Source of the DNA: Callorhinchus milii
Lineage: Eukaryota
Direction: 5' to 3'
Assembly: GCF_018977255.1 (NCBI RefSeq)
Contig: NW_024704771.1
Coordinates: 2,294,001 to 2,358,000 of the forward strand
DNA: 64,000 nucleotides
Within the stretch, counting starts at the first letter, position 1; each line of letters starts with the position of its first letter. The notes under the pieces were generated by a model. That model was given only the letters and a program-made list of their open reading frames with translations. It was not told the DNA's origin and did no database searches. Of this stretch, positions 26,101 through 50,280 are shown in pieces. The position numbers and the translations under genes are program-made.

Positions 26101-29100
26101 TTTACAGGAAATGATGGGAAAGGAAGGAATGAATCTTCAAGGCTACAACTCATCCCAGCACCTTGGAGAGGAAGGGCAGGTTGGAAATGGGGCAACGGCT
26201 AGAGAGACTGTAAGGAATTCAGTGAAAGTTTAAGTTGAAGAGCGTAAATGGCAGCATTTGTGAAAGAGAATTGCCATGCCAGAGGAAAGGAAACCATTCC
26301 TAATATCTATTTTATTTTAGTTTTCAAATGTGATTTCTGGAGGAACTTCTAACCTTCAATGTCAAGTAAATAGAAATTGGAGACCCCAAAGAGAACATTG
26401 GAACAAATGTAAAACAGAATCCCAACACATTCTTCCATAAAAATAGCAAATAGAGGGTAATCGGGAACAAGATAAATCCATAGGGATACAAAGTGAATTG
26501 AAGAGAAGGCTGAACAGGAGATAGTGATGTATTAAATGACCACATTTGTTGGTAATCAAACAGACAGTCACTAACAATGTGCTGTCCAATATAACAGTGA
26601 TGACAGAGCAATACCTGGCAACTCATGAACCCGAGTGAATGGAAAATTCATGTAAACCATAAATAGAAGCAAATAATTGGAAGATGACCTCAATGTATAT
26701 GTCTGCCTTAAACCTGACCTTCAGAATGCTGAACCTGTGTCCTCTTGTCCTGCTGCCTCCATGTGGATGTCCTATAATTATGTCCTATTCCCCAGCTCAG
26801 GTCCATTTCCCTGACAGCCCAGCACCTTCGCACATCCTCCCAATTTGAAAGATGTTTTACAAATGTCTTTTGTTGTTGTCCTGTAGCTTCTCAGCTCTTA
26901 ACCTGTAGTCTTCCCTTCACTGTGAGGTGGATCAGGCAACTTTTGCCTCTTCTGAAGCAATGGTGGCTGTGAGTTACGAAGTGTTGATTAATTCACAAGA
27001 TAATCAGCAGTTTGAATAGGTTAGCAGGAAGGATGGGTGAGCTGGAGTACTGAAATCAGAATTGATTTCAGTTTGTAATGAGAATATTCATTGGCTTCAA
27101 AACCCTCCATGGCCCTGCTTCTCCTGATCTTTGTGATAAGCTAACTCTGTTTCTGCCCCAGTTCTGTAGAATTCCATCCACAGACCCTCCATTCGCTCAG
27201 TCACTTGTCTCCTTCAAGATCCACCTCTTTCACCGAGCTTTCATTCATTCATTCCTACTGCCACCTACCCTGCCCTCCATCCCTCCTGACCCCAAACTTC
27301 AGATAGGGTCCAACATGGGGTGGACCTTTGTATAGTGTGTCTCACACTGGGACATCCTCCTGGCATGAAAGGCACTTTACAAATGTAATTTGTTGTTCTC
27401 AAACCACATGCTGAGTTTGGTATTTTGAAAGGATGAACTCAAGTGGACCGTATCATCCAGACTGATCGAGTTTTCACTTCATGTGCTATACAAATCTGCA
27501 TCATATTTAACAAACAATCATTAATATTTCCTTCTTGTTCATTTACTGACCTGAGATTTGGAGTTTTGCTTCTTGTTCATTTTCTGAATTGTGAATCAGA
27601 CACCTGATCTTGTTGGTTGAATAGATTATTTCTATTTGGCTTTTAACACTGTAGAGACCTTTAGAATCCTCTCTGACAGTCCAATTACTGAGTGTTGTTA
27701 AGTTGTTTCCCTGATCATCAAACCATAGAACCTCTGGTGCTGGGAACCATCCACTGGATTCACACCGCAGCCTCACACCATCACTGTGCTCATCAACGTG
27801 AATCCAAAGCTGACTGCCAAGCCCTGGAAGAGACAGGAGACGTGAATCAGACAATATTTATACCCGGGACATTAAAGACCAGTAACTTTACTGAAAACAC
27901 GTTTACAACATTCTGAATAAATTGACACTAATGAATTGTTCTTGTCAATATAAATTATTGCTTTTGGACATAACATAAACAAATAATGAAAATTTGTATA
28001 CAGAGATTACATTAAATAAAATGAATTGTAAATGTTACTGACCTATAACATTCAACTTTATCAATACATCTTGATATGATCCGGCGTACTCAACAAAGCA
28101 TGTGTACTCTCCGTTATCTGACACCCGCACATCTCCCAGTCTGAGAGACACGTTGCCATTGATAAACTCCTTTACAAACAGTTGTGTTCTATGTCTGTAG
28201 GCTTCATCCTGTTTCCTCAGTTGATGTCGTCTCTCCTTGTATAAGTGCACAGGGGAATCGTAACTTGTCCTGAACCATCTCACCTCCACACCCTCTCGTG
28301 GCAGGTCTGTGGAACACTTACAGTCCAGGACAACATCTGAACCAGCAATGGCTGGGACAGGGAGGGCCGGGCCACTGACTGTGAATCTCTCTGTTCAATA
28401 ACAAACAATGGATAGTTAGGATTTTCAGTCACACTGACTCGGACAAACTCTGCCAATAGACAGTCACTGTCCTTGCAATAATCCTTGCACTTGATATATC
28501 TTATAGATAATTATTTGGGGAGGACAAGTTTTCTCAGCTATGGGGAGAACGTGGGAGTGGGATTGATTTGGATAGCTGCTTTGAAAAGTGGGCAGGAACA
28601 CAATGGGTCAAAGGTCCTCCTGTGTTGTATAATTCTATGATTCTCTGAGGATTTTTTTCAATTTCAATGGATAGAGTTAGGATTTTCAGTCCCACTGGCT
28701 CAGACAAACTTGTCAACAGACGTCACTTAGATATCAATTTGTTTCTGATATAAAGTAGAAGTCACACTTTTACAGCTGCAATAGAACTGACATTGGCAGT
28801 AAATTCATCTGGATCTTATAAATAATAATAATAATCCTTGCATTTGATATAGTACCTTATCATGTCTTCTCAAAAGCGCTTCGCAGAATATATTGTAGAG
28901 GGAATTAACTATATTTCATGGGTAAAAAGTGGTTGCCAATTGCACAGAGTGGTATCCCACAAGCAATCGTGGATTGAGTGACCAATTTATTATTTATGTT
29001 ATTTTAAGGAATTATTACCCCGGAAACCCGATCCATCAATTGACTAACAACCAGGTTCCTACTTAGGGGAGCACAGCTTTGCCTGGTTCCAATCCTACTT

Positions 29101-31423
29101 TTCCCACCGTTTGCACTTCATTTTCATCAACAGCTTCACCTCTAGTCCCCGCGCTGTCATGTGTGGCATCACTCACAGCCCTGTCCTTGGTCCCCTCCTC
29201 TTCAATCTATACATACTCCCTCTCGGTGATGTCATCCTCAGGCAAAGGATCAATTTTCACGTGTATGTGGATGAAATCCAACTCTATCTCACCACCTCCA
29301 CCATTGACTTACAGGACCGTTGATGTCCTGGCTAATGATCTGTCTGACATCAAGTCCTGGACAAGAGCCAATTTCCTCCAGCTCAATGGAAGACAGAGGC
29401 TCTCTTGCTTGGCTCCTGCAGCAGTTCCTCACTTCATCTAATAATAATAAATAATCCTTGCATTTGATATAGCGCTTTTCACGTCGGGAGGACGTCCCAA
29501 AGCGCTTCACAGAATAGACTGTAAAGTGAATTGACTGTATATTTGTGGGCGAACGCGGCAGCCAATTGCGCACAGCAATGTCCCACAAACAGTCGTAGAT
29601 TGAAAATGACCAATTTATTATTGCTTTGTTTTGGAGGGATTATTATTAGGTGTGTGGAGTAAGGAAACTTGCCCAAGGTTTCGCCCTCTGCCTGGAATTG
29701 AACTCAGGTCTCTCACTTGCAAAGCGAGTGCTCTAACCACTGAGCTACAGGACTCCACATCTGTTGAACATTATCACTATTCATGGCTGATTCACATCTC
29801 GGCTTGACTATGCCAACTGCCTGCTCACCGGACTTCCCAGCTCTTCCCTCCACAAGCTACAGATTATTCAGAACTCTGCAGCTTGTGTCCTCTCCCACAC
29901 CAGCCTCTGGGAATTTATCATCCCAGTTCTTGCCCAGCTTCACTGGCACCCCATCCCTCAGAGAATCAAGTACAAAATCCTCGTTCTCATCTTTAAGTCC
30001 TTCCAGAGTCTTGCTCCCCCCTACCTTTCTGACCACCAAATCCTATATCAGCCTGTCGGCTCCCTCCGCTCAGTGAACACTGGCCTGCTTCAGGTCGCCC
30101 GCACTTCCAGCACCACCATTGCCAATCAGGCATTCAGCATCTCTGCCCCCACACTCTGGAATTTTGTCCAACAATCCCTCCACCTCATACCCTCTCTTGC
30201 CTCCTTCAAGTGTCCCTTCTAAAGATCTTGCTCCTCAATTGTATCTTTGGGCACCTTCCCACCCACATCCCCTGCCGTCCACCTCTCCTGACCCGACTCC
30301 CAGCTCGGGTCTAAAAACCCCTGACTGCCTAGCGCTCTGGGACATTTTTCCGATGTGAGGGGCACTGTACAAGTGTAATTTGTTTTTGTTATTGTTGTTG
30401 CATTGTCAGAAGTGCTGTCCTTCTGATGAGCCATTAATTTGAGGTCCTGTCTGCCTGTTTATGTGTCAGTAAACATCCAGTGGCTCTACTCGAAAAGAGA
30501 AGGGAGTTTGCTACGTTCACCTGCACTTCACAGTGAGAAATGCTTTGAAATGTTTTGATTCTATATTCTCACAAGACTCTGTGAAGAAATGTTTGCTGAT
30601 CTCACTTATAACCAGGTTAGCTACAATTTCAGATTTTATGTTCCTTTGTTTTCCAAGAAGGAAGTGTTGTCCACTATTTAGCTTGACAATTCACTTCACT
30701 ATTTAAGCATCTCAATCAGATTCCCCTTCAACCTAATCAGCTCTGAGGAATATAACCGATGTCTAACCAGCCTCTCAACACAGTTAAAACATTTCATCCC
30801 AGGTATTAATCTCATGAATCATTTTAAGATTAGTGGAACTCCCTTCTCACAGAATCATACAATAACACAGCACAGAAGGACATTCGGCCCAGCGAGTCCA
30901 TGCCGGCTCTTTGAAAGAGCTAATGTCTTAAAATCTCAGAGCTTTTAAAAAAAGCAATTTGGTCACTCAATCCAAAACTGTTTATGGGGCACTACTGTGC
31001 AAAATTGGCTGCCACAAATCTGCCCACAAAATTTTCCACAATTCTGTGAAATGCTTTGAGACGTCTCAGCAATGAGATGAGGCACTATATCAAATGCAAA
31101 TATGATTGTTATATAAATTCCTCACTTTTATATTCCTCTTTATAAAGACCATCATTAGTTTCACTAATTACTTTATCAACCCAAAAACAAGATTTCAGTG
31201 ATTTATGTATTTGGAACCTAAATGCCTTTGCTCATCTCCTGGAACATTAGCAGCTCTCAGTGTGTGAATCACACTCACTCCCAACCGCCGCCTTCAGCAG
31301 CTCTCCCTTTACCTTCAGCAATTTAACACCAACAGAAATCAAACAGATTCAATGTGTTTCCTTACCAGTCAGTGAGAGGGGAAGCACAAGCCATAGGACC
31401 TGAATACCGTGTTTCCAGCTCAT
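19640..31423 (-). CDS. Butyrophilin-like gene 1 (leader, IgV, IgC, TM, B30.2); 1-nt frameshift in B30.2
   Basis: Phase-1 exons with GT-AG boundaries: 31366-31423 (leader [19 protein letters not shown]), 28043-28390, 27551-27823, 25015-25134, 24480-24497 (18 nt), 22506-22532 (27 nt), 19640-20159. The total of 1364 nt is one base short of an open 454-aa frame. Confidence 0.88.
20280..22480 (+). repeat. About 2.2 kb GT/G-rich low-complexity intronic repeat, followed by a CT-rich tract (22590-22930)
   Basis: gatgtgagggtgtgtgtgggggg-type units, with an internal duplication of about 110 bp (21130-21235 vs 21810-21915). Confidence 0.95.
22506..22532 (-). CDS. 27-nt exon of butyrophilin-like gene 1
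   Basis: ttccag|TGTTGAAAAGGATTCGCAGGTGTGCAG|gtaaga, reading VLKRIRRCA. Confidence 0.8.
23568..24375 (-). mobile_element. Young L2 LINE 3' end
   Basis: Closely similar to 15403-16150. ORF reads [24 protein letters not shown]. Confidence 0.92.
24480..24497 (-). CDS. 18-nt micro-exon of butyrophilin-like gene 1
   Basis: cctctag|ATCTTGAGAAGAGAGTGG|gtaagt, reading DLEKRV. Homologous to 44531-44548. Confidence 0.75.
25015..25134 (-). CDS. Transmembrane exon of butyrophilin-like gene 1
   Basis: [40 protein letters not shown], 120 bp, AG/GT boundaries. Confidence 0.88.
25261..25640 (+). mobile_element. tRNA-headed SINE, older long subfamily
   Basis: gtgaagtcctggtag..ggttagattcccaggcag head and caagtttccttactccac core. 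Confidence 0.75.
25680..26290 (-). mobile_element. Degraded L2 fragment
   Basis: GVPQSSIF-like RT remnant in the - frames. Confidence 0.6.
27551..27823 (-). CDS. IgC exon of butyrophilin-like gene 1
   Basis: [50 protein letters not shown], the typical BTN IgC motif C.S.GWFP.PEV.W. Confidence 0.92.
28043..28390 (-). CDS. IgV exon of butyrophilin-like gene 1 (348 bp)
   Basis: [64 protein letters not shown], a BTN/MOG-type V-set domain. Confidence 0.93.
29050..30400 (+). mobile_element. Degraded L2 interrupted by a SINE
   Basis: [24 protein letters not shown], with a tail at about 30340-30390. Confidence 0.75.
29439..29758 (-). mobile_element. Full-length young tRNA-Ala-like SINE with an L2-type tail and (ATT)n
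   Basis: Head GTGGAGTCCTGTAGCTCAGTGGTTAGAGCACTCGCTTTGCAAG..GAGTTCAATTCC. Near-identical to 48392-48713 and 52748-53071. Confidence 0.92.
31366..31423 (-). CDS. Leader (signal peptide) exon of butyrophilin-like gene 1
   Basis: ATG at 31423, 58 nt, donor ctg|gtaagg. Identical to 50223-50280. Confidence 0.85.
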
Positions 31424-34400
31424 CCTCTAGGACCTTCACAATGAGATCAGAACACAGCAAATCAGATCATTACACACAGAGATTTGTGATCAAATATAAT
31501 TGATAAAATATAAAACATAATTAATAATTCTGTGATCTTACAACATGTTCTTTGAATTTACACCCACAGCAGAACAAACTGCCTTCTCTGTTGGAATAGT
31601 GATTGGGATCTTTAACTGTGACAGTGAGGCCCCCTATGGCCCCGCACTGGGGGTCTCCATGAGGTGGTTTGGGGAAGAAACATGTTATGTGTAACTGCTG
31701 TAATGTGCTCCTCCCCCTCCCCCTCCTCAGAGCCGCTCCTTATTCACCCCAACAAGGTGCAGGTCAGAGAGGAGCTCCCATTCCCTCCCTCCTCACTTGC
31801 CTCCAATTCTCAGCGTTTAAACAACAAATTGGGAATAAACTGACTGCAGCAGCTCCCGCATTACTATTGACACAAACCTGACAATACAGAACATTTAACT
31901 CACACTAACTGTACCTGTTGCAGCTTTGCTTGCAACCAAAGGAGCCAATCTGGAATGTAGATTTCAGTAATAGCGCTGACAAACTTTTTAACATGCCATA
32001 AACACCTTAAGCAAAACTGCCATATATGTGTGTTTAGGTCTTAGTTCCTGTGACCTAAACACATCAATGTAGAAGCTCACCGTCGAAAAAAGATATCCTC
32101 ATAACACTTCCCTTGGCAAGACCTTTCTGATCAGGTATAAATCATATCTTTATTTCAATGCGTTATTGGCAGACAGACCCACAGACATTTTGTCTTTATT
32201 AATATAGAAAGATGTATTTCTCTTGAAGGCTGTGTGAATTCCTCTGTCACTACTTTGTTGCAGAATACCATGCATACCTCATATTTTGAGGCTTAAATAA
32301 AGCATTTTTAACATAGTTCATCAATAGAATATTTCCCCAAAATATGCCCATGACACTCCCCCTTGAAAGTCCTTTCCAATGAGGTATAAATCGTGTCTCT
32401 ACGTCAATCGATTATTGCGTTCTTGGAGGACACACAGACAGACTGACGGACATTCTGTCTTTATTAGTGATTTTTTAAACTCCAGATCAGCGCACTTAAT
32501 AGTGAAACCAATGAATTATATACTGGAATAACAGTAATGTTAAGGCATTATTTTAACGGTAAAATAATATATCATTTCAGGACACAATTTCTGACACTTA
32601 CCTGTTTAAATTTGGCATTGAAAGACAAGAATCTGCACTCTTAAAAATAAATGAAATGTGTGTTCGGGATGGCGATGTCCAGAGTCTAATGCTGCTTTCG
32701 GTTTCTGTGGGAATCACATTATAGTCACACAAACAGGGAAAGGGCAGTTCAAATTTTACCTACAATAGAGAGTGAGGAATAATCGTATGGTTTTCATGTT
32801 AGTGTTGATTGTTGCTCATCACTTGCTGTCAGTAACTAACATTCCTGCTCTGAGACCCTGGTTACACCCTCACGTTTCCCTGGAATAATCTTCAGTGCCA
32901 CAGAAAACGTCCCACGTGATTGATTTCCAGGTTAATGTGTAACAGATCTGTATGGTTGAAGGAGATTGCTGAGGTTGGGAGGGGAGAGACTGAGGTGAAA
33001 CCATGATCTGGAACTCAATCAGCTGGGGGTGGGGAGCCAGGGAGCTGAGCTGAGATAGAGTGATAGGTTGGCGGAGTCTGGAGTGGGGAGGGCACGGTTG
33101 CAGTTATAACACCGTGACTATCTCTATATGATCAAGGTTGAATTGAAAACCTAGATCTATTAAAACACCATTTATTTACAGGCACAGTTACACTGTGTCC
33201 CCATTCTGCCAGCCTGTATCTACAGGATGTTTAGCTGATAAAACAGATGTGATTGGGGCATGGAGTTTCATTTGGGTGAGTGTCCGGGCAGCGGGCGGAG
33301 TTAATAATAATAATAATTGTTATTAATTAACTGAATTTTGAGTTTGGTGGAGATGGCGAAACCAGCGACGAGTTCATTTAAATAGTCCAGCTGGGAAGTG
33401 AAGAAGGTGTCGATGAAGATTTCAGCTGTGTCAGTGATGTACGGACAGTGATGGGCAATGTGGCGGAGGTGGAATAAAGGGGTCCTGGTTAGGGAATGGA
33501 TGTGTGGTAGCAATGAAATACAGATACGATGCCCGGCTGGGGTCAGACACCACCTCACCTTTGTACTGGGTGCAGGTGGTAATATAATAATAACCTTTGT
33601 ATTTGATAAAGCAACAAACAGCGGGAAAGCTCTGCAAACTTTGCCTGAAAGGATGGTTTAAGTTGATTCAATAACAATGTTTAAGAGAAAAGTAGATAAT
33701 TATTTGGGGAGAATGAATTTGCAGGGCTCTGGGGAGAGAGCGGGGAATAGGATTGATTTGGAAGCTCTTTTCAAAGAGCCGACACAGACACAATGGGCCA
33801 AATAGCCTCCTTCTGTGCTGTATAATTTATGATTCTATAGCTGTGCTGTTTTATCTGCTGAGACTCCAGCAGTTACCCCAATGCACAATCTGGGGACCCC
33901 CGGCCTTGGTTCTTGCCAACCTGAGCCTAGTGAGAGATCTTCCAGGATTCCTGCACTGATAATCTCCAGTGCCCAAAGCTGGGAAGGTGCGTGTGTGGAT
34001 GTTGTGCTGTTTGTCACAGCCTTTTTGCTTCTTCTCTGCCCAGTTTCCCGCCTTCAGCTGCTCCGAACAGTATGTGAAGTGTGTGGTGTTGGTGTCCAGT
34101 CAGATTGTGTGTGTGTGTGTTTGGCTTTGCTGAAGACCAGAAAAGCGCTCAAGTGAGGGGCACAGTGACACACCTACAACTGTCCCCTCCTCCCCGCCTC
34201 CCTAATTGGTAAGAGAATCTGTACTAAGTCTGTGTGAGTGTCTGTCTGTCAGTGTATCCGACAATCACACAATAACCAAATGACATAGAGTCATGATTTA
34301 TACCTCATTGGATAAGTCTTGCAGCTGGCAGTGTCATAGGCATATTTTTTTGCCCATCGTTAATTAGCTATATTAAAAAATGCTTTAATTAAGCCTTATA

Positions 34401-34544
34401 TATGAAGTATCCATCGTATTCTGCAACTACATAGCGACAGACGAAAGCACAAACTGTTCAGAGAGATACATCTATACTCTGCAACAAATGTATGGCTTTC
34501 TTCTGGTAGTCGTGGGAGCCGTGTCCTCCCATGTGGGACAGACA

Positions 34545-34970
34545 ACAACAACAAGAACAAGATTGCATTTATAGAGGGCCTTTCACGTCGGGAGGACGTC
34601 CCAAGGTGCTGGACAGTTGGGTCGGGACCCGAGCAGTGGGGGAAATGGTCAGGGTGAGGGGAGGGAAGGGAGGGAGCGAGGAGGGGGTAGAGAGTCGAGA
34701 GGGGAGCTGAAGGCTCGGTCAAAGAGAAAGGTCTTGAGACAGAGAGACTGAGGGAGAGACAGAGAGAGAATCTGAGAGCAACAGCGAAATAGACAGAGAC
34801 TGAAATAGTGAAAGGGATAGAAAGAGAAACAGAGAGAGAGAGACACTGAGATAGACTGAGATAGTGAGAGACAGAGAGAGAGAGTGAAACTGGGAGTGAG
34901 AGATTTGGAGAGAGACTGAGCGACAGACAGGGAGACTGAGAGAGGGAGACAGAGAGAGACCGTGAGACAA
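34545..34970 (-). mobile_element. L2 3' tail (34545-34740) fused to an (AG)-rich microsatellite (34740-34970)
   Basis: Tail matches 15403-15580; the AG tract is directly visible. Confidence 0.8.
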
Positions 34971-35269
34971 AATATATTAAAGGAGTCCTCCAACAGGAGT
35001 CCTCCCAGATGAGTATAAATAAAGATTAAATATCTGTCTGTGTGACTGTCTGTATGTCAATCTGCATTCCATATGGGATCATTTGGTTTCAAATAAAGCA
35101 GCAACAGGTACAGCTAGTATAATATAAAGACAAAAAATCAAATATACACTATATGATATATATTACATATAAAGCAGGGAATCCTTTAATTAAAGAATAA
35201 ATCACTTATTGTATAATAAATGACAATGAAACACATTATTATTATACTCCGGGTTCAAATATTATTGGA

Positions 35270-36210
35270 CTCTGGGATCAAAAGTACAATTTCTTAATTT
35301 CTTGGATGACACCACATTGGGGGCTGCATTTAATACTAAGGAGGACCGCAACAAATTACAAGACATTAATAAACTTGCTGAATGGGCATTTAATTGGCAA
35401 ATTCATTTCAATATAGATAAGTGTGCGGTGTTACATTTTGTTAGGAGGAATAAGGAGGTCATATACTGCCTGAAAAATAAGAAACTGAATGGGGTTGAGG
35501 AGCAAAGGGATCTCGGGGTACAGACACACAAATTGCTAAAAGTAGCGACGCAGGTTAACAAGATCATAAAAAAAGCAAACCAGACATTGGGGTTCATATC
35601 TAGAGGTATAGAAATGGAAGCAGGGAAGTCATGTTAAACTTATATCAAACCTTACTTAGACCACACTTGGAATACTGTATACAGTTCTGGTCCCCGTATT
35701 ATAGAAAGGATGTAGAGGCACCGGAGAGGGTGCAAAGGAGATATACAAGGATGATTCCAGAACTGTAAGGTTATAGCTATCAGGAAAGGTTGGACAAGCT
35801 GGACTCTTCTCTGGTAAAGAGAAGGGTGAGGGGTGACCTAAAAGAGGTCTTTAAAATAATGGAAGATTTTGATAGGATAGACCTAGAGAAGATGTTTCCA
35901 CTTGAGGGGAGACCAAAACCAGGGGCCATTGATATAAAATAGTCACCAATAAATTAAATAGGCAAGTCAGAAGAAACTTCTTTACCCAGAGAGCGGTGGG
36001 AATGTGGAACTTGCTACCACAAGGAGCAGTTGAGGCTGATTGCAAAGATGGATTTAAGGGGAAGCTGGATAAATACTTGAGGGGGAAAGCAGTAGAAAGT
36101 TACACTGATAGGCTTAGTTGAGGAAGGGCAGGAGGAGGGTCATGTGGAGCATAAGCACTGACATAGGCCAATTGGGCCGAATGGCCTACTTCTGTGCTGT
36201 ACGTTCAATG
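35270..36210 (+). mobile_element. CR1 LINE 3' portion
   Basis: DDTTLG..LAEWAFNWQIHFNIDKC.VLHF..VEEQRDLGV, with the CR1 tail near 36170-36200. Confidence 0.88.
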
Positions 36211-38354: not shown

Positions 38355-38905
38355 TTATCTTTCCAATCGATGTGTAAAGGAACTAATTGTCAATGGTTCA
38401 GAGTTTTTTCCATCCAGATTAAACCAGGGACTGAAGAAAGGATAAAGTTTCTCAGTGGAAGTGTGGGTGAAAGTGTGGAGATGAGACATGTTATCAGCGT
38501 TGTAAAATGTCACCTGTCCCCCCTCATAGTCCAGGAAAACTCCGATCTTCCTGACTTTCACTTTTAGAGGCAGGCGGGTCCAAGGTGAGGTACCAGCCCA
38601 GTATTCATTTCCATTTCTCAATATCACAGTCCAGTATCCAGTCTGTGGTGTGGCTGTGATGTCTCCTTTCCTGTTGACAGACTCTCTGGCCACTCCAACA
38701 TTCCACGCAGTCTTGTTGCCCACCTGCACTTCCCAGTAATGTCTCCCTGATGTTAATCCCTCAGATCCCAGGACACAGACCCAGCGATCAAACCTCTCTG
38801 GAGTGTCTGGGAGTGGCTGCATTTGGCCTCCAAGTCTCACACTGGTCAGGTCCTCAGACAGGATGAGATTAGGATGGGCTGTGTCAGGATCCAGAGTGAC
38901 TCGAA
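38355..38905 (-). CDS. B30.2 exon of butyrophilin-like gene 2
   Basis: [68 protein letters not shown]. Confidence 0.93.
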
Positions 38906-41900
38906 CTTTAAAAAAATAGAAAATGTGAATCAAGCTTACATAAAAAATTACATTAAGAATTTATATTGGGAATTATAAGTTCAGCCAAAAGTTTTAGAGT
39001 TGAACAAATTGAATAAAATTGAATATCTCAATTAAAAAAATCCCCAAATACAATTAAGCTTTAATAAACTGAAAAAAAACCAAAAAACAAGCTGATAATT
39101 CACAACAAAACATTGGCATTTTCTGTCCATTGTGTCCATGTCACTGCTGCCTCTTTTCCTAAAGCATCCTTTCTTTTATTAATTCCACTTTCAAACTCTC
39201 CCCATAATTTTAAATATTTTTAATATTCAGGTAATTATTCATTTCCCTTTTAATATTGATTCAGGATCAACAGTAGCTTTAGTAATGAATTCCAAACCCC
39301 TATAACTTGTTGAGAGAAAAATCCATCACAAACTCTCCCATACATTTTTTGTTGACAATCCTGAAACTGTGGCCTTTGAGCCTGATACTCCAACTAAAGG
39401 AAATAGCTTTCCCCTATCAACTCTGTTATGTCCCTTCACTCTATTACATTCCTTTTGAATTGCATGTCCTCTACTCCAGAAGAAAACAAACACATTTGAC
39501 TATTTTCTCTTCACAGAGACCAGTCACTGGCGGTAGAGATTCCTCCCACTCAAGTTCCTGTTAACCCTGTAAGCCAAAGCCCTAGTAGGGTGGTCCTAGC
39601 TGGGCAAGCAGACAGCAATATCAATGGCAAGCTACGCGGTTTTAGCTGATTAGACTCCAGCAGTTACCCCAACACACACTATTGGGTCCCCAAGCCTTAG
39701 CTCTTGCCAACCTATGCCTGATACTTTCCAGAATTAGGTAAGAGGGATGCATCCCTCCAAGGAGAGAGAGGTCAATCCATACAAACAAATATCTCTGTGG
39801 AATGGATGGAATTCTCAGGTTGGTTTGGACACTCTTATACACAATGATGGGGTTCCACATGCATCAGACACGCAGCTGACCAAAAAAAATCATTATTTAA
39901 ATGTGTGTGTTCTGAGGCTTCTCTCATTGAATTGATTCACAAATTATTTTTGAAATGAACAGATTACTTGGGAGAAAGAAAAGGATCTGAGTTTGTAATT
40001 GCAGATCAGTGACTCTCATTTGCAGCTGGGTTGAATTTGGTGTAAAGTGTGAATCACCAAAGAGAGATGGAGATTTGAATTGCTTGTGACTGAAGTCGGA
40101 GCAGCAAACCCTCAGTGGATTGAAGCAAGTCTGGCATCTGGCACCTCCCCATAGAGGAACCTTCTGCCTTGTGTTATCGACAGCTGTAAACGGGGTCTCT
40201 GTGGGGCTGAACTGGCTCCATGGTGACATGTTTGTCAACAGAATGTCGGGAATCGAGGCTGTGACGTCTCTAGTTCAGTTCCTGAGCCAGGTGCAGCCGC
40301 AGTATTCCAGGTCACTGCTGATAACAGCACATTGGCAGGACTTGGAAGGGCAGACCAGTCACTGGGGGCAGGGAGTCATCCCACTGAGCTCCTGTTAACC
40401 CTGCAGCCAAAGCCCTAATGGTCAGGGTGGTCCTAGCTGGACTAGCAGCAGGAGGCAAGCCAGACGGTGCTCTCAAAGGCAAACTATGTGACTTAGCTGG
40501 TTGTGAGGTGAGGGGGAAAAGGAGGAGTGGGGGAAACACATGGTGTATAAACATAGACTGGCTGAGCGGAATGATGTGTGTCTGTGCCTCTCACTCTATA
40601 TAATTACCTGCACAACGGGAAAGCCTTTTCATCTCTGAAAAGAAAAAGGAAAGGTTTTTGAAAACGCTCAGCATCACTGTGAATGTTTAGATGAACATCA
40701 TTCAGCAAAACTGGCTCAGTCTGTAACTCTCGTCTCTCAGTCATAACAATGACTCAGAGCTCCACATCAGTTACTCTGAGCTCGAAGACTGGGCTGACCA
40801 TCCATTGCAGCGCTGTAGGAGTGTTTCATTGTCGGAAGTGCTGTCCTTCAGGTGAGACGTTAAACCGAGTTTCAGTCTTCCTGTTCAAGTGGGTGTTAAA
40901 GATCCTTTGGCACTATTTGAAAGTGAAGGGAGTTGCTCTCTCCTGGTGTTCTGGCTGACAAACCTCCAGAAAAAATTGGTCATTCATTAGTCACTAAAAA
41001 TTAGTCACTTCTTGGTTATTTATGGGTCATTGCTGTGTGAAATTGGGCTAATTTGTTTACCTGCAGCCACAGTCATTCCAATTAACTGTATTCTGTGAAG
41101 CACTTTCACATCACTTCCTCCTGATGTGAAAGGTGCTGTACCAAATGTAAGAATTTTATTATTAATAATAGCCATAATCACATAATAATATGCACAGATA
41201 ATTGGATAATAACTAACAACTCAGGGAGACAATTCAAAGGGGATTGAATTGATACTGTAAGCTTCAACATAATAACTACACATGAAATATAACCTTGTCA
41301 GATATAGAACTGAGAATTTGCTGAGTTGTCAGCAAATGATATCATGTAAATTGAGTTTCAGTTGATTATTAGACCTATATTCACTTTCCCAACTTTATTT
41401 AGTTCATAACAACAGCCTCTAAGCGCTTTGGGATGTCCTCCCGACGTGAAAAGCGCTATATCAAATGCAAGGATTATTATTATTATTATGCAGCGCCTTT
41501 CATGTAGGAAGAGCATCTTGAAGCACTTTTAATAAGTTGGGATGGAATGGCAAAACCACAATGTGACAATTATCACTGGTAACATAAGATAACATACAAC
41601 AATAACAACAAGATTCCATTTATAGAGCGCCTTTCACGTCGGGAGGACGTCCCAAGGCGCTGGACAGTTGGGTTGGGACCTGAGCAGTGGGGAAATGGTG
41701 AGGGGAGGGAAGGGAGGGAGCGAGGAGGGGGTAGAGAGTCGAGAGGGGAGCTGAAGGCACGGTTGAAGAGAAGTGGATGTTCAGCCACATAACATAACAT
41801 GTTCAGCCACATAACATAACATGTAGGAGCAGGAGTAGGCCATTCAGCCCTTCGAGCCTGCCCCGCCATTCAATCAGGGGTGATCTTCCAATCTAACTCC

Positions 41901-44900
41901 AGATAATAACATAACCCTGCATTATTCCCATATCTCTTAATCCATTTTGCAATAATAAATCTATCTATCTATCTCAGTCTTGAATATATTCAAGGACTGA
42001 GCAAAAACAGCCCTTTGGGGTAGTGAGTTCCATACATTCACCACCTTTTGAGTGAAGAAGTTCTTCCTCAACTCAGTGTGAAAGGGCTGCCTCTGGTTTT
42101 AAGGTTGTGACCCCTGGTTTTAGTTTCTCCAACCGGGGGACACAATCTCCCACTCTCTACTCTATCATGCCTTTTGATGATCTTATAGGTTTCTATAAGG
42201 TTCCCCTCTAATTCTTCTATATTCTAGAGAATATAGACCCAAATTGTTCAGCCTATCCTCGTAACTTATCCCCTTCATCCCTGGTACTAACCTAGTAAAT
42301 CTGCGCTGCACCCCCTCCAAGGCAAGTACATCCTTCCTTAAATGAGGAGACCAAAACTGCACACAGTATTCCAGGTGTGGTCTCACCAGAGCCCTATACA
42401 GTTGCAGCAAGACTTCCCTACTCTTATACTCTAATCCTTTCATAATGAATACTAACATACCGTTCGCCTTCCTAATTGCTGCTGCACCTGCAGACTAACT
42501 TTCTGTGATTGGTGTACAAGGACACCCAAGTCCCTCTGGACGCTAACACATTCCAATCTCTCCCCTTCTAAAAAAATAACCGGCTCTACTGTTTTTGCTA
42601 CCGAGGTGGATGACTTCGCACTTCCCTACATTATACTTCATCTGCCACTTACCTGCCCAGTCACCTAACCTATCTATGTCTCGCTGTATTTTTGTAATGT
42701 CATCCTCTGTGTTTACACTTCCTTCTAGTTTTGTGTCATCTGTGAATTTAGATATACTAGCTTTGATATCTTCATCTAGTCGTTGATGTAGATGGTAAAT
42801 AGCTGAGGCCCAAGGACTGATCCTTGTGGCACTCCACTAGTCACATCCCGACAATCCGAAAAGGATCTGTTTATCCCTACTCTTTCTTTCCTGCCCATTA
42901 ACCATTCCCCAATCTACGTTAATATGCTCCCCCCAATTCCATGGGCCCTTAACTTTTGGACTAACCTTTTATGCAGCACCTTATCGAATGTTTTCTGGAA
43001 GTCCAAATAGACCACATCCACTGATTCACCCTCATCTAGTTTACTCGAAATATCTTCAAAAAACTCTTATGAGATTTGTCAATCATGACTTCCCTTTTGT
43101 AAAGCCATGTTGACTTGGCCTAATTATATTGTGCCCTAAATACCGCACTACCACATCCTTAATCAATGATTCTAAAAATTTTTCTATAACTGATGTGAGA
43201 CTAATTGGCCTATCATTCCCCATCTTTTCCTTTCCACCTTTGTGTGACATTTGCGATCTTCCAATCCATGGGGACTGTTCCAGAATCCAAGGAATTTTGG
43301 AAGATCGGACATAAGGCCTCCACTATTTCATAAGCTCCTCTTTTAAAACCCTGGGATGTAAGCCATCCGGACCAGGGGATTTGTCGCTTTTTAGTGCTAA
43401 CAGTTTCCCAGCACCAATTCTCTACTAATGAAAATTTCCCTAAGTTGCTCCCTGTCCTTATCCCTTTGGTGCATCTCTATTGTTGGTAGACTTGTTGTGT
43501 CTTCTCGGGTGAAGACAGATGCAAAGTACCCATTCAGGGACTCTGCCATATCCTTATCCCCGTTACAACTTCTCCCGTCTCTGACTGTAGTGGACCTACA
43601 TTTACCCTCACGAGCTTATTCCTCTTAATATATTTCTAAAAGCTTTTACAATCAGACTGAATGTTCCTCGCTCGCTTACCCTCATACTCTTTTTTCTCGC
43701 TCTTAATGAGTTTTTTAGTTTTTTTTTTGCTGGTTTCTAAAACTCTCCCAATCTTCAGATTTGCTGTTTTTCTTAGCAGTTTTATAAGCTTATTCTTTTA
43801 ATTTGATGCTTTCCCTAACTCCTCTAGTTAGCCACGGATGAATTGCTTTCCCTCTTATTCCGCAAGGGATTATGTAACCGTTGAGAATTTTGCACTACAT
43901 CCTTAAATATTTACCACTGTTGGTGGTACATTTTTACCTCTTAATCTTATTCTCCAGTCTATTTTACCTAAATCTTTCCTGATACCTACAAAATTAGCCC
44001 TATTTAAGTTTAGAATACTTGCCTCGGATTTAACTATATCCCTCTCTAACTTAATGCCGAATTCAATCATATTGTGGTCACTCTGCCCGAGAGGATTCGT
44101 AATACCTACACTGCCAACTTGCCCTGTTTCGTTACACAGAACAAAGTCTTGGATGGCTTGTCCCCTAGTTGGTTCCTTGGCGCGCTGCTCTAGAAAGTTA
44201 TCGCTCAACATGCAATGAACTCTTCTTCTGACCTACTTTTGCCGATTTGGGTTTCCCAATCTATGTGGAGATTCGAATCACCCACTATTATCGTTTTACC
44301 TTTCCTACATGCTCTACTGATTTCTTGATTAATATCCTGTGCTATATTGTGATCACTGTTTGGGGGTCTATAAACCAAATGAATGAACCACAATGAATAT
44401 CGCACTTTACCATCATGTTAACATATTTGACAGTACAAGCAAATATTTATAAAGTTGGTGGTCGGAGATGAAATGTGTTGGTTATCATTTAATCACAACA
44501 TTCAAATGTTATTTAATTTTGCTGACTTACCCAGTCTTTTCTGGAGATCTATTGGATACAAATAAAATTATTAGGATAATCTCAAACGTATTCTTAATAC
44601 TATATTATTTTGAAAGAAGTTCTGCATATTTACAATTTTAACCAAACCTGTGAGAAATACAGATCAATAAAATCATAGAATTGTACAGCACAGAAGGAGG
44701 CAATTTGGCCCATCATCTCTGTGACAGCTCTTTGAAAAGAGCTATCCAATCAGTCTCACTCTCCCGCTCTCTCCCCATAGCCCTGCAACCTTATTCTCCC
44801 CAAATAATGATCTACTTCTCTCTTAAAAGTTGTTATCGAATCGGCTTCCACCACACTTTCAGACAATGGATTCCATATCCGAACAACTCGCAGTTGAAAA

Positions 44901-47900
44901 TTTTTTTCCTCACCTCCCCTGTGTTGCTTTTAACAACTATTTTAAATCTTTGTTCTCGGGTTACCGACCCACCCTCTAGTGGAAATAATTTCTCCCTGTT
45001 CACCTTATCGAATCCCCTCATAATATTGAAAACCTCTATTATGTCACCTCTAAACCTTCTCGCTCCAAGGAGAATAATCCTAGCTTCTCTAGCCTTTGCT
45101 GATAACTGATGTCCTTCAATCCTTGTACCATCCCAGTAAATCTCCTTTGCACCCTCTCCATTGCCTTGACATCCTTCCTAAAGTGTGGTACCCAGAACTG
45201 AACACAGTACTCCAGGCCTAACCAGTGTTTTATAAAGGTTCATCATAACTTCCTGACTTCTGTATTCTATGCCCCTATGTATAAAGCTTAATATTCCGTA
45301 TACTTTTTGAACAGCTTTATCTTCCTATCCTGTTACCTTCAAAGAGTTACTTATATGAACCCCCTGATCTCTCTGTTCCTTCACTCCATTTAAGATTGTA
45401 CCATCAGCTTATATTGCCTCTCCTCATTCTTCCTCCCAAAATGCATCACTACATATTTATCCACATTAAACTTCATCTGGCATGTGTCTGCTCACCAGTC
45501 TGTTTATCTCCTCTTGCAGTCACTGTTTATTGCTTTTCCTGGCTTAGTGTCATCTGCAAACTTGGAAATTGTACTCTCTATACTGAATTCCAGGTTATTT
45601 ATATAGATCAAAAACAGCAGTGGTCCCAATACTGTCCCCTGGAGGACACCACTGCACACTTCCTTCTAGTCAGAAAAACAACCGTTCACCATCATTCTCT
45701 GCTTTCTGTCCACCAGTTAGATCTGCATCCATGCTGCCACTGTCCCTTTAATATCGTGGGCTTCTATTTTGCTTACAAGTCTCTTAAATTGCCTTTTTAT
45801 CAAACACCTTTTGAAAATCCATATAAACTACATCAACTGCCCTATCTTCAACCACCTTCTCTGTTACTTCATCAAAAAACCGTATCAGGTTTGTTAGACA
45901 CAATGTGCCTTTAACAAATTGACTGATGGCTATCCTTTATTAACCCATATTTTTCTAAGTGAAAATTTATTTCTCCCAAATTATAGTCTCTAGAAGTTTC
46001 GCCACTACTGACGTTAGGCTGACTGACCTGTAGTTCCCGGGTTTACCCTTCTGCCCCTTCTTTTACAGGGGACTAATATTTGGCAACACCTCGGTGTCCA
46101 AGAAGAATTGAAAGATTGTGGCCAGAGCCTCCGCTATTCCAATACTTACTTCCCTCAGTAATCTAGGATGCATCCCATCTGGATCATCTAACTTGGTCCC
46201 AAATTGTCCCCACCCTAACTTTGACTAATCTTTAACTCTTTATTTGTTTACAAAATACCTTAGGGTTACCTTTGATGTTACCCACTAACCTTTGTTCATA
46301 TAATCTCTTTGCTCCTCTTATTTCCTTTTGCAATTCTCCTCTGTACTTTCTATATTCTATTCGATTATCTTCTGTATTTTGTTCATGATATTTATCATCA
46401 GGCTCCTTTTTCTGTTTTACGTTAATCCCAATCTCCTTAGTCATCCAGGGAGGTTTGGATGCCCTAACTTTCCCATTTTTGGGAATGTATTTGTTCTACC
46501 TCTGAACCAGCTCTTCATGAAGATTTCCCATTGTCCTTTAGCTGATTTATCTGCCGATCTTTCTTTCCAGTCCACCTTGGCTAAGTCCCTCTTTAACTCA
46601 CTGAAATTAGCCTCTTCCAGTTGAGTATCTTCACCTTTGATTGTTCCTTGTTCCTTTCCATAAGTGCTCTAAACCTAATGATGCTGTGATCACTGTTGTC
46701 CAGATGCTTTCCTACCGAATCCTGGTCCACTTGCTCCACTTCATTCCCCAGAACTAGAGCCAGTATTAATATCTTCCTTGTTGGGCTGGAAACATACTGA
46801 TCCAGAATGTTATGCTGCACACATTTCAGGAATCCTTCCACCTCCTTGCCCTTTACCCTCTTATTGTGCCAGTCTACGTTAGTATAATTGAAGTCCCCCA
46901 TTATTACTACTCTACTGCTTTTTCATCTTTCTGAAATCTGCTTGCAGATTTACTCATCTATCCCCTTCCCACTATTTGGTGGTCTATAGTATACACAATA
47001 CAATTACACAAATTTTGCACTGTAAGTTTGTAATCACATTTCTTTGAAAAATACTTTGTTATTGGTTTTCAACAAATTAGCTGTGATATCTGAAGTAAGA
47101 ATTTCTCTGAAAAATGCTGCTTACTTCAGAATGATTTCTATCATGTCTTACAATCTCTGGCACCAAACTAATACTATGAGAATTGCCTTCACATAGTTAT
47201 CCTAAAATAAATATCAGTATAACAGCTGTGTATTATAGATCACCGAATGGTTCCCACATTCATCTAAAACTACTGCACATTTTATTCATAAATCTTGCAT
47301 GAAGTATATTGCATTTCACATGAAACCACATGAGTTTTATCATTTGTGATCTTTTTGTTATCAGTACATACCTTTAATCTCTCTGTGCTGCTTTATATTG
47401 TAAGGCAAAACAAAACTCAGAGCCACTGTGACAAGTCCTAAAAGCACTGAGGAAACCACCAAATTCACTGGCACTTTGGGAAAGAACTCATCTGTCAAGA
47501 AATGTAAATAGATGTTCATTGATAATGATAATAATAATCTACACATTTGATATTACTTTGGTGTTACATCTCTAAGTGCTTTACAGAGTAAAGTGCAGGA
47601 CTCTATTTTGTGGGCAAAACATGGCAGCCAGTTGCGCACAGCAGTGTCACACAAACAGTCATGGATTGAGTAACCAAATTTTCGGGGGGACAGATTATTA
47701 CTCCCAGAAAACGATCCTCCAATTGACCAACAATCGTATTCCTACTTAATGATAGGTAAGCAGAGGCATTTGTGTGGAGTAAGGAAACTTGCCTAAGGTT
47801 TCTTCATGCCTGGGAATTGAACCCAGGTCCTCCTGCTTGTGAGGCCACTACACTAAGGAAATCCTTTCATTCTGATATCAAACAACAAATCGCCTTCAAT

Positions 47901-50280
47901 TCATTACTCAACACTCTTTGCTGAGATCTTGTAAGTTACAGAAATCTGTATCATATTTATCAGACTATCATTAGTAATTCAGTGTAAATACTGACCTGAT
48001 ATATGCAGTTTCCCTTCTTGTTCATTTTCTTCATTGTGAATTAGACACCTGATCTTGTTCGTTGAATGGATTATTTCTATTTGGCTTTTAACACTGTAGA
48101 GACCTTTAGAATCCTCTCTGACCGTCCAGTTACTGAACGTTGTTAAGTTGTTTCCCTGATCATCCAACCATAGAACCTCTGGTGCTGGGAACCATCCACT
48201 GGATTCACACAGCAGCCTCACACCATCACTGTGCTGCCCATCAACGTGAATCCAAGGCTGACTGCCAAGGCCTGGAAGAGACAGGAGTCGTGAATCAGAC
48301 AATATTTATCCCCAGGATATTACAGTGCAGTAACTTTAATGAAAACACATTGACAACATTCTGAATAGATGATATTAAATTACATTCATTTATAATAATA
48401 ATAAACCTTGCATTTCATATAGCGCTTTTCACGTCGGGAGGACGTCCCAAAGCGCTTCACAGAACACACTGTAAAGTGCATTGACTGTATATTTGTGGGC
48501 GAACGCGGCAGCCAATTGCACACAGCAATGTCCCACAAACAGTCATAGATTGAAAATGACCAATTTATTATTGCTTTTGGTTTTGGAGGGATTATTATTA
48601 GGCTCTGTGTGGAGTAAGGAAACTTGCCCAAGGTTTCGCCCTCTGCCTGGAATTGAACTCAGGTCTCTCACTTGCAAAACGAGTGCTCTAACCACTGAGC
48701 TACAGGACTCCACGGCACTTTATGTTATTAAAACACATGTAGTTTCACCCACAAAATACACAGACAACTACACAGTGAATTCACTTCACAGTACATTCTG
48801 TGAAGCACTTTAAGATGTCTCAAAGATGCGATAAGGCGTCATATCAATTGGAAAGATTATTATCATTATCATTACTTTGGAATGTAATTATCATTAAAGT
48901 GGAGTCCTGTAGCTCAGTGGTTAGAGCACTCGCCTTGGAAGCGAGACACCTGGGTTCAATTCCAGGCAGAGGGCGAAACCTTGGGCAAGTTTCCTTACTC
49001 CACACAGAGCCTAATAATAATCCCTAAAACAAAACAATAATAAATTGATAATTTTCATTCAATGACAGTTTGTGGGACACTGCAATGCTCAATTGACTGC
49101 CGCGTTTCGTCCACAAATATACGGTCAATTCACTTTACATCATGTTCTGTGAAGCGCTTTGAGCTGTCGAGAAGACATGAAAAGCACTATATTAAATGCA
49201 AGATTGTTTACAGACTTTTCTTTGTTTATAATGTATTTCAAACACAGAATAACATAACGATTGTATTTACACACCATTACCCCCCAAAAAAATGAGTTGT
49301 AAACATTTCAAACCTATAACTTTCAACTCCATCACTGCCTCTTCATACCATCCAGCGTAGTCAATGAAACATCTGTAGGTGCCATTATCTGAGCCCCATA
49401 CATCTTTGAGTTTGAGAGATACATTGCCATGAATGAATTCCTTTTTAAAAAGTTCTGTTCTGTGTTTGTAGGCTTCTTCCTGCTCGCCTGTCTGATCGCG
49501 CCCCTCACTGTATAAGTGCACAAGGGAGTCAAATCTTGTCCTGAACCATCTCACCTCCACACCCTCCAGGGGAAGGTCTGTGGAACACTTACAGTCCAGC
49601 ACAACATCCGAACCAGCAATGGCTGGGACTGGGAGGGCCGGGCCACTGACTGTGAATCTCTCTGTTTAATTACAAAAGAAAGGGGAAAAAAGTTAGGATT
49701 TGCAGAATGGCACTGGTACAACTTCCTGTAACTCAGTGGTTAGAGCGCTCGCCTCGCAAGAGAGAGGACCTGGGTTTGATTCCCATGCAGAGCGGTATGT
49801 TCGGCAAGTTTCCTTACTCGACACGCCTCTGGTTACCTTGCAGTGAATAGGAACTTGGTTGTTAGTCAATTGGCTGACCGCATTTCCGAGGGTAATAATC
49901 CCTCCAATAAATAAATAAATGAAATTGTAATAATTTAATCACTCACACCATGACTGTTTTGGGAATTGGCTGCCTCATTCCAACCACAAAATATACAGTC
50001 AACTTACTTTGTAGTATATTCTGTGAAATGCTTTGAGACATCTTAAAGATGTTATAAGGCGTTATATCAAATGCAGGATTTATTATAAATATTAAGGTAG
50101 AACATCAGCAGCTGTCAGTGCGTGAATTTCGCTCACTCCCAGCCACGGTCTTCAGCAGCTCCCCCTTTACCTTCAGCAATTTAACACCAACAGAAATCAA
50201 AGACATAAATGTGTTTCCTTACCAGTCAGTGAGAGGGGAAGCACAAGCCATAGGACCTGAATACCGTGTTTCCAGCTCAT
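38355..50280 (-). CDS. Butyrophilin-like gene 2, intact, 465 aa (leader, IgV, IgC, TM, B30.2)
   Basis: Phase-1 exons 50223-50280, 49314-49661 (348), 47996-48271 (276), 47372-47491 (120), 44531-44548 (18), 40608-40634 (27), 38355-38905 (551). The total of 1398 nt is open to the stop codon, and all introns are GT-AG. Confidence 0.92.
40608..40634 (-). CDS. 27-nt exon of butyrophilin-like gene 2
   Basis: cttttcag|AGATGAAAAGGCTTTCCCGTTGTGCAG|gtaatt, reading EMKRLSRCA. Confidence 0.8.
40705..41170 (+). mobile_element. Old SINE (DeuSINE/SacSINE-like)
   Basis: tggctcagt head, gggtgttaaagatcctttggcactatttgaa core, and L2-like tail. Confidence 0.65.
41825..44385 (-). mobile_element. CR1 LINE, 5'-truncated (part of endonuclease plus RT), degraded
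   Basis: [38 protein letters not shown] and VYRPPNS motifs. Tail aggagtaggccattcagccc with (cataa)n. Confidence 0.9.
44531..44548 (-). CDS. 18-nt micro-exon of butyrophilin-like gene 2
   Basis: ccaatag|ATCTCCAGAAAAGACTGG|gtaagt, reading DLQKRL. Confidence 0.78.
44675..47010 (-). mobile_element. CR1 LINE, 5'-truncated and internally deleted
   Basis: [31 protein letters not shown], with a tail at 44675-44720. Confidence 0.88.
47372..47491 (-). CDS. Transmembrane exon of butyrophilin-like gene 2
   Basis: [40 protein letters not shown]. Confidence 0.88.
47530..47860 (-). mobile_element. tRNA-headed SINE, older long subfamily
   Basis: gtggagtaaggaaacttgcc core and reverse head. Confidence 0.7.
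47996..48271 (-). CDS. IgC exon of butyrophilin-like gene 2
   Basis: [42 protein letters not shown]. Confidence 0.92.
48392..48713 (-). mobile_element. Full-length young tRNA-Ala-like SINE
   Basis: Near-identical to 29439-29758. Confidence 0.92.
48899..49205 (+). mobile_element. Full-length tRNA-Ala-like SINE, head-to-head with the previous copy
   Basis: gtggagtcctgtagctcagtggttagagcactcgcc... Confidence 0.88.
49314..49661 (-). CDS. IgV exon of butyrophilin-like gene 2 (348 bp)
   Basis: [58 protein letters not shown]. Confidence 0.93.
49721..50090 (+). mobile_element. tRNA-headed SINE, older long subfamily
   Basis: cctgtaactcagtggttagagcgctcgcc head with the long core. Confidence 0.75.
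50223..50280 (-). CDS. Leader exon of butyrophilin-like gene 2
   Basis: [22 protein letters not shown] at 50280, donor gtaagg. Confidence 0.85.

Follow-up and report, generated by a model that had tools for sequence, protein, structure and literature searches.

Recombination between paralogs has two precedents within the butyrophilin family, to which the two neighbouring minus-strand butyrophilin-like genes studied here (gene A and gene B of the elephant shark, Callorhinchus milii) belong. Both lie in a stretch of 64,000 nucleotides that was analysed as a whole and is called the window (MU249860.1:2294001-2358000, assembly GCA_018977255.1); the loci fetched for comparison overlap it at 100% identity. 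In chicken, the BG genes, which are butyrophilin homologues, include hybrid genes that have been ascribed to recombination, and the pairwise homoplasy index (Phi or PHI) is significant within their V-like region (p = 0.0017; Salomonsen et al. 2014, PMC4046983). The C. milii cluster is similar in that butyrophilin-family genes stand in tandem and in the same orientation, their segments have different histories, hybrid genes occur, and PHI is significant in the V-like region, with p = 0.0017 in chicken and about 0.01 here. It differs in that the C. milii genes have both IgC and B30.2 exons, whereas the chicken BG genes have neither. The layout of the mosaics is also different: the chicken BG lineages are defined by the two gene ends, between which the sequence is scrambled, whereas in C. 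milii a short homogenised island is found, with a breakpoint inside the IgV exon.

A second parallel comes from hominoids, where the IgV exons of BTN3A1, BTN3A2 and BTN3A3 are reported to be homogenised and BTN3A3 to be a chimera (Afrache et al. 2017, as summarised in PMC6790196). According to that summary, the hominoid BTN3 genes resemble those of C. milii in that IgV-coding sequence is homogenised and a chimera has its 5' part from one paralog and its 3' part from another. However, the summary describes homogenisation of the whole hominoid IgV exon, giving three near-identical domains, whereas in C. milii it covers the first third only and the rest is diverse, with at least 17 different IgV sequences at the protein level. 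Furthermore, the ligand-contacting segment is known to escape concerted evolution in the exons for the MHC (major histocompatibility complex) peptide-binding region and in CEACAM paralogs (PMC7042247). The likeness to C. milii lies in a divergent, here presumed, ligand-contacting segment next to sequence homogenised, here probably, by conversion. In the MHC and CEACAM cases, selection is backed by a ratio of replacement to silent divergence (dN/dS) above 1 or by trans-species lineages, whereas in C. milii dN/dS is about 0.5 and the data come from one species.

Uneven conversion along immune multigene families is a well-known process in itself. What is specific to C. milii is a breakpoint that lies inside the IgV exon, at a strand boundary, and recurs in two old lineages, those of gene B and of a third gene, P24 (product P0024). 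A recent survey lists C. milii butyrophilins without mention of conversion (PMC12841164).

Mosaic IgV exons in two neighbouring genes

Genes A and B each consist of leader, IgV, IgC, transmembrane (TM) and B30.2 exons, all on the minus strand, as established by collinear BLAST blocks and translation, and both genes are mosaics along their whole length. The IgV exons, at 28043-28390 in gene A and 49314-49661 in gene B, have exactly the limits that an earlier note on this DNA had given. Each spans 348 nt in phase 1 between an AG acceptor and a GT donor, and both translations start with ERFTVSGP. The gene A exon is identical to the corresponding part of product P0007 and the gene B exon to the IgV of P0003, and both match the Pfam V-set domain (E = 3.5e-11 and 1.6e-11, respectively).

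Within this exon, the two genes are divided into a similar and a dissimilar part. Exon nt 1-125 (N part; 28266-28390 in A, 49537-49661 in B) carry 7 differences, which change 1 of 41 residues (R to L; 98% amino acid identity), whereas nt 126-348 (C part; 28043-28265 in A, 49314-49536 in B) carry 60 differences and 30 changed residues. The earlier counts for the N part, about 7 nt and 1 residue, were therefore exact, and so was the number of about 30 changed residues in the C part, although these fall among 74 residues and not 76. The difference between the two parts was significant by Fisher's test (p = 4e-7) and remained so for third codon positions only (6/42 vs 32/74, p = 0.0018). By Nei-Gojobori counting, dS was 0.21 and dN 0.011 in the N part, compared with dS 0.90 and dN 0.24 in the C part (ratio 0.27), which bears out the many synonymous changes that had been reported for the C-terminal part. 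Because the contrast within the exon is present at silent sites, differences in selection at the protein level alone cannot account for it. The switch is indeed abrupt, as had been claimed: the maximum chi-square breakpoint between A and B lies at exon nt 127, directly after the residues WFRT that end the N part, and the observed value was reached in 6/20000 shuffles. In an AlphaFold2 model of the gene A product (predicted local distance difference test, pLDDT, 88.9), this switch coincides exactly with the point where strand C ends. Strands A, A', B and C and the BC loop belong to the N part, and the CC' loop and strands C', C'', D, E, F and G belong to the C part.

The other exons of the two genes differ to varying degrees. 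The coding parts of the leader exons (31366-31423 in A, 50223-50280 in B) are identical at 58/58 nt (dS 0), as counted before, and are also identical to the leaders in loci L005 and L007. The IgC exons (27551-27823 and 47996-48271) differ at 19/273 nt and by one codon indel, with a dS of 0.18; their identity, previously put at about 90%, is 90% for amino acids and 93% for nucleotides. The TM exons (25015-25134 and 47372-47491) show a dS of 0.41 and a dN of 0.20, and the B30.2 exons, at about 19640-20161 in A and 38355-38933 in B (limits of the open reading frame, ORF), have 77% nucleotide identity by BLAST.

Between the exons, A and B do not align beyond short exon-flanking stretches. For the region between IgV and IgC, local alignments of the intron ends were used; a global alignment put a spurious gap inside the exon. 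This showed that the first ~110 nt of the IgV-IgC intron are poorly conserved, whereas the last 108 nt, beside IgC, are ~86% identical. A BLAST block pairs 28015-28428 of A with 49286-49705 of B, and this block, the breakpoint and the family identity profile described below together delimit a homogenised island that consists of the last ~40 nt of intron 1 and exon nt 1-127, at 28264-28428 in A and 49535-49705 in B. Beyond about -45, the gene B intron aligns with that of P24 and not with that of A. On the other side of the breakpoint, an unhomogenised valley comprises the IgV C part and the first ~110 nt of the IgV-IgC intron (27932-28263 in A), and the 5' end of that intron is barely alignable with B. 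The matching valley of B, placed at 48380-49534 by BLAST and local alignments, holds two copies of a short interspersed nuclear element (SINE). The IgV-IgC intron is 1042 nt long in gene B compared with 219 nt in gene A because these two oppositely oriented copies sit inside it. One SINE family is represented at 29433-29758, 48385-48713, 48899-49210 (inverted) and 52739-53071, with copies 87-96% identical.

Divergence across the cluster and incongruent segment histories

The contrast between the N and C parts was found throughout the family. Nine paralogs were compared at the DNA level, namely A, B and seven more cluster members (loci L001-L007), which gives 36 pairs from loci spread over about 3 Mb; P0011 and P0023, for which there is no record of a gene with exactly that product, are not among the nine. 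In 35/36 of these pairs, dS was lower in the N part (0-0.26) than in the C part (0.14-1.4). An even spread of divergence once more paralogs are included, which the earlier note had named as the result that would speak against it, was therefore not seen. Mean pairwise identity among the nine paralogs was 0.65 at -100 to -41 of the upstream intron and 0.80 at -40 to -1, reached 0.93 at third positions of the N part, and was 0.71 at third positions of the C part and 0.72 at +1 to +60 of the downstream intron; unrelated 60-mers gave 0.54 with the same aligner. Judged by these identities, the silent sites of the C part are about as diverged as the flanking introns and roughly neutral, and the anomaly is the too-similar island, from roughly -40 to +125, not the divergent C part, which reverses the emphasis of the earlier note. 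The N part of gene B itself has 7-9 nt differences from seven paralogs of the ALPVPAIAG type and 14 from P19. The best breakpoint falls at nt 124-174 if a pair includes B or P24. Among A-type genes it falls later, near nt 274-326, because most of their remaining differences are in the F-G region.

A paralog from outside the cluster, P26 (product P0026, locus L008, scaffold MU249943.1), which belongs to a distant subfamily, served as a control for constraint. Compared with P26, the nine cluster members had an N-part dS of 0.77-0.83 and a C-part dS of 0.45-1.0, and all nine shared the same 14.5-15 silent differences in the N part. At the protein level, identity to a Heptranchias butyrophilin is 43-45% in the N part and 39-53% in the C part. 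Since the N part is normally diverged with respect to P26, its first 125 nt have no intrinsic silent-site constraint or low mutation rate, and either of these as a universal property of the N part is ruled out by the comparison. Within the cluster, by contrast, the first 125 nt behave as one sequence. Family-wide, dN/dS by pairwise counting was about 0.5 in both the N and the C part, which indicates that the two parts differ in the depth of their divergence and not in the strength of constraint.

Different segments of the same gene also have different relatives. P24 has only its B30.2 exon inside the window (55681-56235, minus strand, identified by Pfam; locus L002 overlaps the window at 100% identity), and its Ig exons lie past position 64000. 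In the tree of B30.2 exons, B and P24 form a clade with 100/100 support. Likewise, in the 200 nt upstream of the IgV exon, B and P24 align over the full length at 82% identity, whereas A/B and A/P24 align only over the last ~40-50 nt. At the same time, the N parts of B and P24 have 95-98% amino acid identity to the A type, and in its IgC, B reaches 84-92% identity with the five full-length paralogs of the A type (A, P08-P12; P08 is product P0008), compared with 45% with P24. The P24 IgC (14789-15073 in L002) has an identity of no more than 43-45% to its counterparts in A and B and, on visual inspection, looks similar to that of the P0040 subfamily. P24 thus appears to be a three-way chimera with an A-type IgV N part, a B-type B30.2 and a divergent IgC. 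Judging from these similarities, B and P24 belong to an old lineage, and A-type sequence is present in the leader and N-part island of both and also in the IgC of B.

A recombination signal was detected within the IgV exon as well. The observed PHI value was reached or undercut in 17-28/2000 permutations for the whole exon and in 9-26/2000 permutations for the C part. The C part of gene B is a patchwork of motifs with 49-66% amino acid identity to every paralog, and in windows of 12 amino acids its nearest paralog shifts between P24, P40, P13/P17, P23, P12 and P14; the P0040-type subfamily was compared with this part by protein motifs only. The C part of gene A consistently stays nearest to its close relatives P08 and P11.

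Probable uneven concerted evolution and competing explanations

We consider it probable that the mosaic IgV exons reflect concerted evolution, uneven along the genes, by interlocus gene conversion. Several hallmarks of such a process are present: a tract that is too similar, silent sites included, normal divergence outside the group, incongruent segments together with a statistical signal of recombination, and a cluster of genes in the same orientation. Segmental recombination, which had been proposed earlier as one of two possible causes, is supported by the fourfold contrast at silent sites, the incongruence between segments, the significant PHI and an N part that is unconstrained when compared with P26.

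The process would consist of repeated short-tract interlocus conversion, perhaps with some unequal crossing-over, among tandem paralogs in the same orientation. It would keep a set of islands near-identical, namely the leader, the stretch made up of the last ~40 nt of intron 1 and the ~125 nt that open the IgV exon, and the IgC exon plus flanking sequence. This would hold also for members that, judged by their other exons, descend from separate old lineages. Gene B belongs to an old lineage in common with P24, and A-type sequence is found in its leader, IgV N part and IgC. The C'-to-G part and the start of the next intron would escape homogenisation and keep a roughly neutral, old divergence. 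In addition, the C'-to-G part would trade short motifs between paralogs, so that the surface formed by C'', F, FG and G would carry a set of residues particular to each gene. As to why tracts would end after strand C, accumulated divergence may block extension of the heteroduplex and so form a self-reinforcing barrier, selection for distinct binding surfaces may remove converted C parts, or both may act.

Several points weigh against concerted evolution by conversion. The PHI signal is moderate (p about 0.005-0.014), and approximately unbiased (AU) tests did not reject the {B,P24} grouping for the IgV C part (p 0.30) or for IgC (p 0.62), with short segments and unrooted trees. A signature of GC-biased conversion was sought in the GC content of third codon positions, which gave no consistent signal (0.56 in the N part, 0.48 in the C part and 0.42 in IgC, which is homogenised too). 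Furthermore, silent sites in the N part number only ~30, and there is dependence among the 36 pairs. Donor sequences and tract ends are not pinned down event by event, and it is from the flanks and the remaining exons that the direction of transfer is deduced. Classically, concerted evolution is proved where paralogs are more alike than orthologs of related species, and C. milii alone was compared; the protein matches included no other holocephalan sequences, only sharks, gars and one teleost (Centropristis) at 35-45% identity. Finally, the first 125 nt may have a role at the nucleotide level that is specific to the cluster, for example as a splicing or regulatory element.

Alternatively, A and B could be young duplicates with a silent divergence of ~0.2, in one of which the C part was replaced once from an unsampled and very divergent donor. 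Such an event would produce the abrupt breakpoint with similar flanks on both sides (dS 0.21 in the N part, 0.18 in IgC), and the C part of B is indeed about equally far from all sampled paralogs. However, the A and B introns are unalignable save for short exon flanks, the TM (dS 0.41) and B30.2 exons (77% nucleotide identity, with B joined to P24 at 100/100) are old as well, and the intron upstream of the gene B IgV is P24-like and not A-like. The N/C contrast in 35/36 pairs also extends beyond the pairs that contain B, and the C part of B has different motifs in common with different paralogs, with no one donor. A single replacement is thus unlikely.

Selection without recombination would combine strong purifying selection on strands A, B and C with diversifying selection on strands C' to G. 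The position of the switch at a structural boundary, the end of strand C, would be accounted for in this way, as would the concentration of the most variable residues at outward F and G positions and in loops. Silent sites, however, show the same contrast, the adjacent ~40 nt of intron are homogenised too, and dN/dS is ~0.5 in both parts and never above 1. Deep comparisons, moreover, show no better conservation of the N part than of the C part, and the P26 result largely refutes an explanation by selection only, which we regard as very unlikely.

A hot spot of germline mutation, local to the 3' two-thirds of the exon, would lift silent and replacement changes together, and dN and dS do climb together in the most variable codons. 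It is nevertheless a most improbable cause, rejected on the ground that the third positions of the C part match the introns in divergence and do not exceed it. The anomaly is the low divergence of the N part, which is gone in the comparison with P26, and the spatially structured incompatibility of informative sites detected by PHI is not a product of recurrent mutation. An assembly artefact that joined or collapsed reads of different paralogs is extremely improbable even though tandem paralogs with near-identical stretches are hard to assemble and gene A has a homopolymer frame shift in its B30.2 exon: splice sites and reading frames are intact in both IgV exons, the contrast recurs in nine loci over about 3 Mb, and a chimera of the IgV exons is made unlikely by the same A and B sequences in an older RefSeq prediction (EukProt P0007, XP_007883214.1) and in UniProt (P0002, P0003, P0006), entries that may rest on one assembly.

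Binding face, gene family context and neighbouring features

The IgV domains of human BTN2A1, BTN3A1 and BTNL3 bind the gamma-delta T-cell receptor (TCR) via their CFG face (PMC7083227; bioRxiv 10.1101/2023.08.30.555639). These proteins and the C. milii genes have the same domain order and fold at a sequence identity of about 30%, and TCR binding enters the comparison as positional equivalence only. BTN2A1 aligns without gaps over the IgV domain (E = 2e-33, identity about 30%), and the offset of its numbering was checked by residue identity at 7/7 positions. Seven BTN2A1 residues were tested by Karunakaran et al., and alanine mutants of R65, R124, Y126 and E135 abolish binding (PMC7083227). 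In the alignment, these residues correspond to q38, q97, q99 and q108, and K79, S72 and Y133 correspond to q52, q45 and q106. The equivalents here are R38, K/S52, T/R97, F99, Y106 and D/E108. Position q38 is conserved, whereas A and B differ at q52 (K/S), q97 (T/R) and q108 (D/E), and q99 and q106 vary among other paralogs.

Entropy was computed over 11 distinct IgV sequences with an ALPVPAIAG-type N part, with side-chain orientation taken from strand parity (anchored on Cys, Trp, Y-x-C and the BTN2A1 mutants) and not from coordinates. Thirteen positions had an entropy of at least 1.1: q56, q59 and q60 in C'' and the C''D loop, q86 in the EF loop, q95 and q101, which point outward on F, and q104-106, q110, q112, q114 and q116 in the FG loop and outward on G. 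By strand parity and BTN2A1 equivalence, the variable positions would fit variation on the CFG face. The earlier suggestion that selection targets the receptor-binding face is borne out only in part. The most variable positions do lie outward on F and G, in the FG loop and in C'' and the C''D loop, but the homogenised part includes strand C of the CFG face, and the divergent part includes strands D and E, which belong to the opposite face.

For diversifying selection, the second cause put forward in the earlier note, no direct sign was found. In family-wide pairwise counting, dN/dS was about 0.45-0.55 in the N part, in the C part and in the presumed binding-face codons. It was 0.45-0.53 at outward F and G positions plus the FG loop, and 0.51-0.58 in two family-wide pair sets for the codons from the end of C' to the C''D loop (q52-60), where it is undefined for the A-B pair. 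No dN/dS above 1 was obtained in binding-face codons by this counting; the ratio was ~0.5 throughout, never above 1, and only 0.27 in the C part of the A-B pair. To our knowledge, no ligand is known for any cartilaginous-fish butyrophilin. A different ratio was seen in the intracellular domain. Among the B30.2 exons of loci L001, L003 and L004, dN was 0.12 compared with a dS of 0.08 between P08 and P09, and 0.09 compared with 0.05 between P09 and P10, which suggests relaxed or positive selection on this domain in close paralogs.

C. milii thus provides an early-branching jawed vertebrate with a large and, as the signals above suggest, actively recombining butyrophilin cluster, in which the diverse part of IgV includes positions equivalent to the gamma-delta TCR contacts of human BTN2A1. 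Genes A, B and P24 are natural chimeras for asking which half of the domain sets binding specificity. Trees and dN/dS values for the whole IgV exon mislead in this family unless the exon is split at the breakpoint. As a speculative and rather unlikely extension, the cluster might constitute a germline IgV library, in which a constant module kept up by conversion (leader and strands A to C) is joined to a shuffled variable module (C' to G), giving many CFG-face variants that match, and co-evolve with, the V segments of the elephant-shark gamma-delta TCR or of another lymphocyte receptor. If this were true, co-diversification of butyrophilins and their receptors would date to the base of jawed vertebrates.

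The genes are members of the butyrophilin/butyrophilin-like (B7-related) family, in agreement with their ectodomain, their TM and B30.2 segments, their exon layout and their relatives. In the genes of the window, each exon encodes one domain and the leader/IgV/IgC/TM junctions are in phase 1. The joined exons of gene A form an open frame that is identical to P0007 through the end of the TM exon. Apart from the V-set, Pfam identified C2-set_3 ('Butyrophilin subfamily 3 member A2-like Ig-C') in the IgC exons (E = 1.8e-20 in A, 8.9e-22 in B) and PRY and SPRY in the B30.2 exons (E = 1e-22 to 1e-29), and the TM exon encodes a hydrophobic stretch, modelled by AlphaFold2 as a helix (235-275) in the gene A product. 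The best protein matches were all C. milii 'butyrophilin subfamily 1 member A1-like' proteins, followed by butyrophilin-like proteins of sharks and gars. A sequence search of solved structures found BTN1A1 (3.5e-34), BTN2A1 (2.1e-33) and BTN3A (1e-31 to 1e-33). The top Foldseek matches were the ectodomains of BTN2A1, BTN3A1 and BTN1A1, and TM-scores (normalised by target length) were 0.78-0.86, with BTN2A1, BTN3A and BTN1A1 ectodomain structures among the matches. By sequence and fold together, the nearest solved structures are BTN1A1, BTN2A1, BTN3A1-3 and BTNL3/8.

The window is part of a tandem cluster of such genes. A stretch of ~95 kb contains P08, A, B and P24, all on one strand; the P08 gene adjoins the window on its left, and more members are found on the same 4.1 Mb scaffold. 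A block of 3.8 kb (30590-34351 in the window, 7064-10829 in L004) that holds the gene A promoter region and leader matches the sequence upstream of P08 at 97% identity, whereas the bodies of these two genes reach no more than 82-87%. The 5' region thus seems to have undergone a large conversion or duplication recently.

In gene A, a shift of the reading frame by one base, located in a run of G within 19846-19905 (minus strand), breaks the B30.2 exon into two ORFs that overlap. The close paralog P0011 reads through the same site, and the shift is either a genuine mutation that makes a pseudogene or a sequencing error in the homopolymer. Just upstream of this exon, in the last intron of gene A, a degenerate G/T-rich minisatellite extends over ~2 kb (20305-22380) with units of 18-22 nt resembling GGGGATGTGAGGGTGTGT and is followed by a CT-rich array (22592-22914). 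Both arrays yield long spurious ORFs rich in H, T and P, and both could favour recombination.

On the plus strand, an ORF rich in charged residues at 7469-7762 has, on our own reading, the look of a coiled coil, and a PRY/SPRY exon is found at 9086-9796. This B30.2 exon has 82% nucleotide identity to that of gene A and is inverted relative to it; in the tree it nests among those of butyrophilins. The two features suggest a TRIM-like gene or a butyrophilin fragment, for which neither a RING nor a B-box exon was identified. The window contains a single N, at position 12328.

Two further rearrangements were noted at other loci of the family. At ~12200-12225 in L007, the first 12 nt of the P0019 IgV exon are tandemly duplicated at the acceptor (agagattcacag / AGAGATTCACAG), and a 12-nt tandem duplication at this site explains the TERFTERF repeat in P0019, P0001 and P0033. 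At the P0036 locus (L006), two B30.2 exons with identical translations (17548-18051 and 35082-35585) lie ~17.5 kb apart and the IgC exon is reduced to a degenerate remnant (11284-11358), which indicates local duplication and exon loss.

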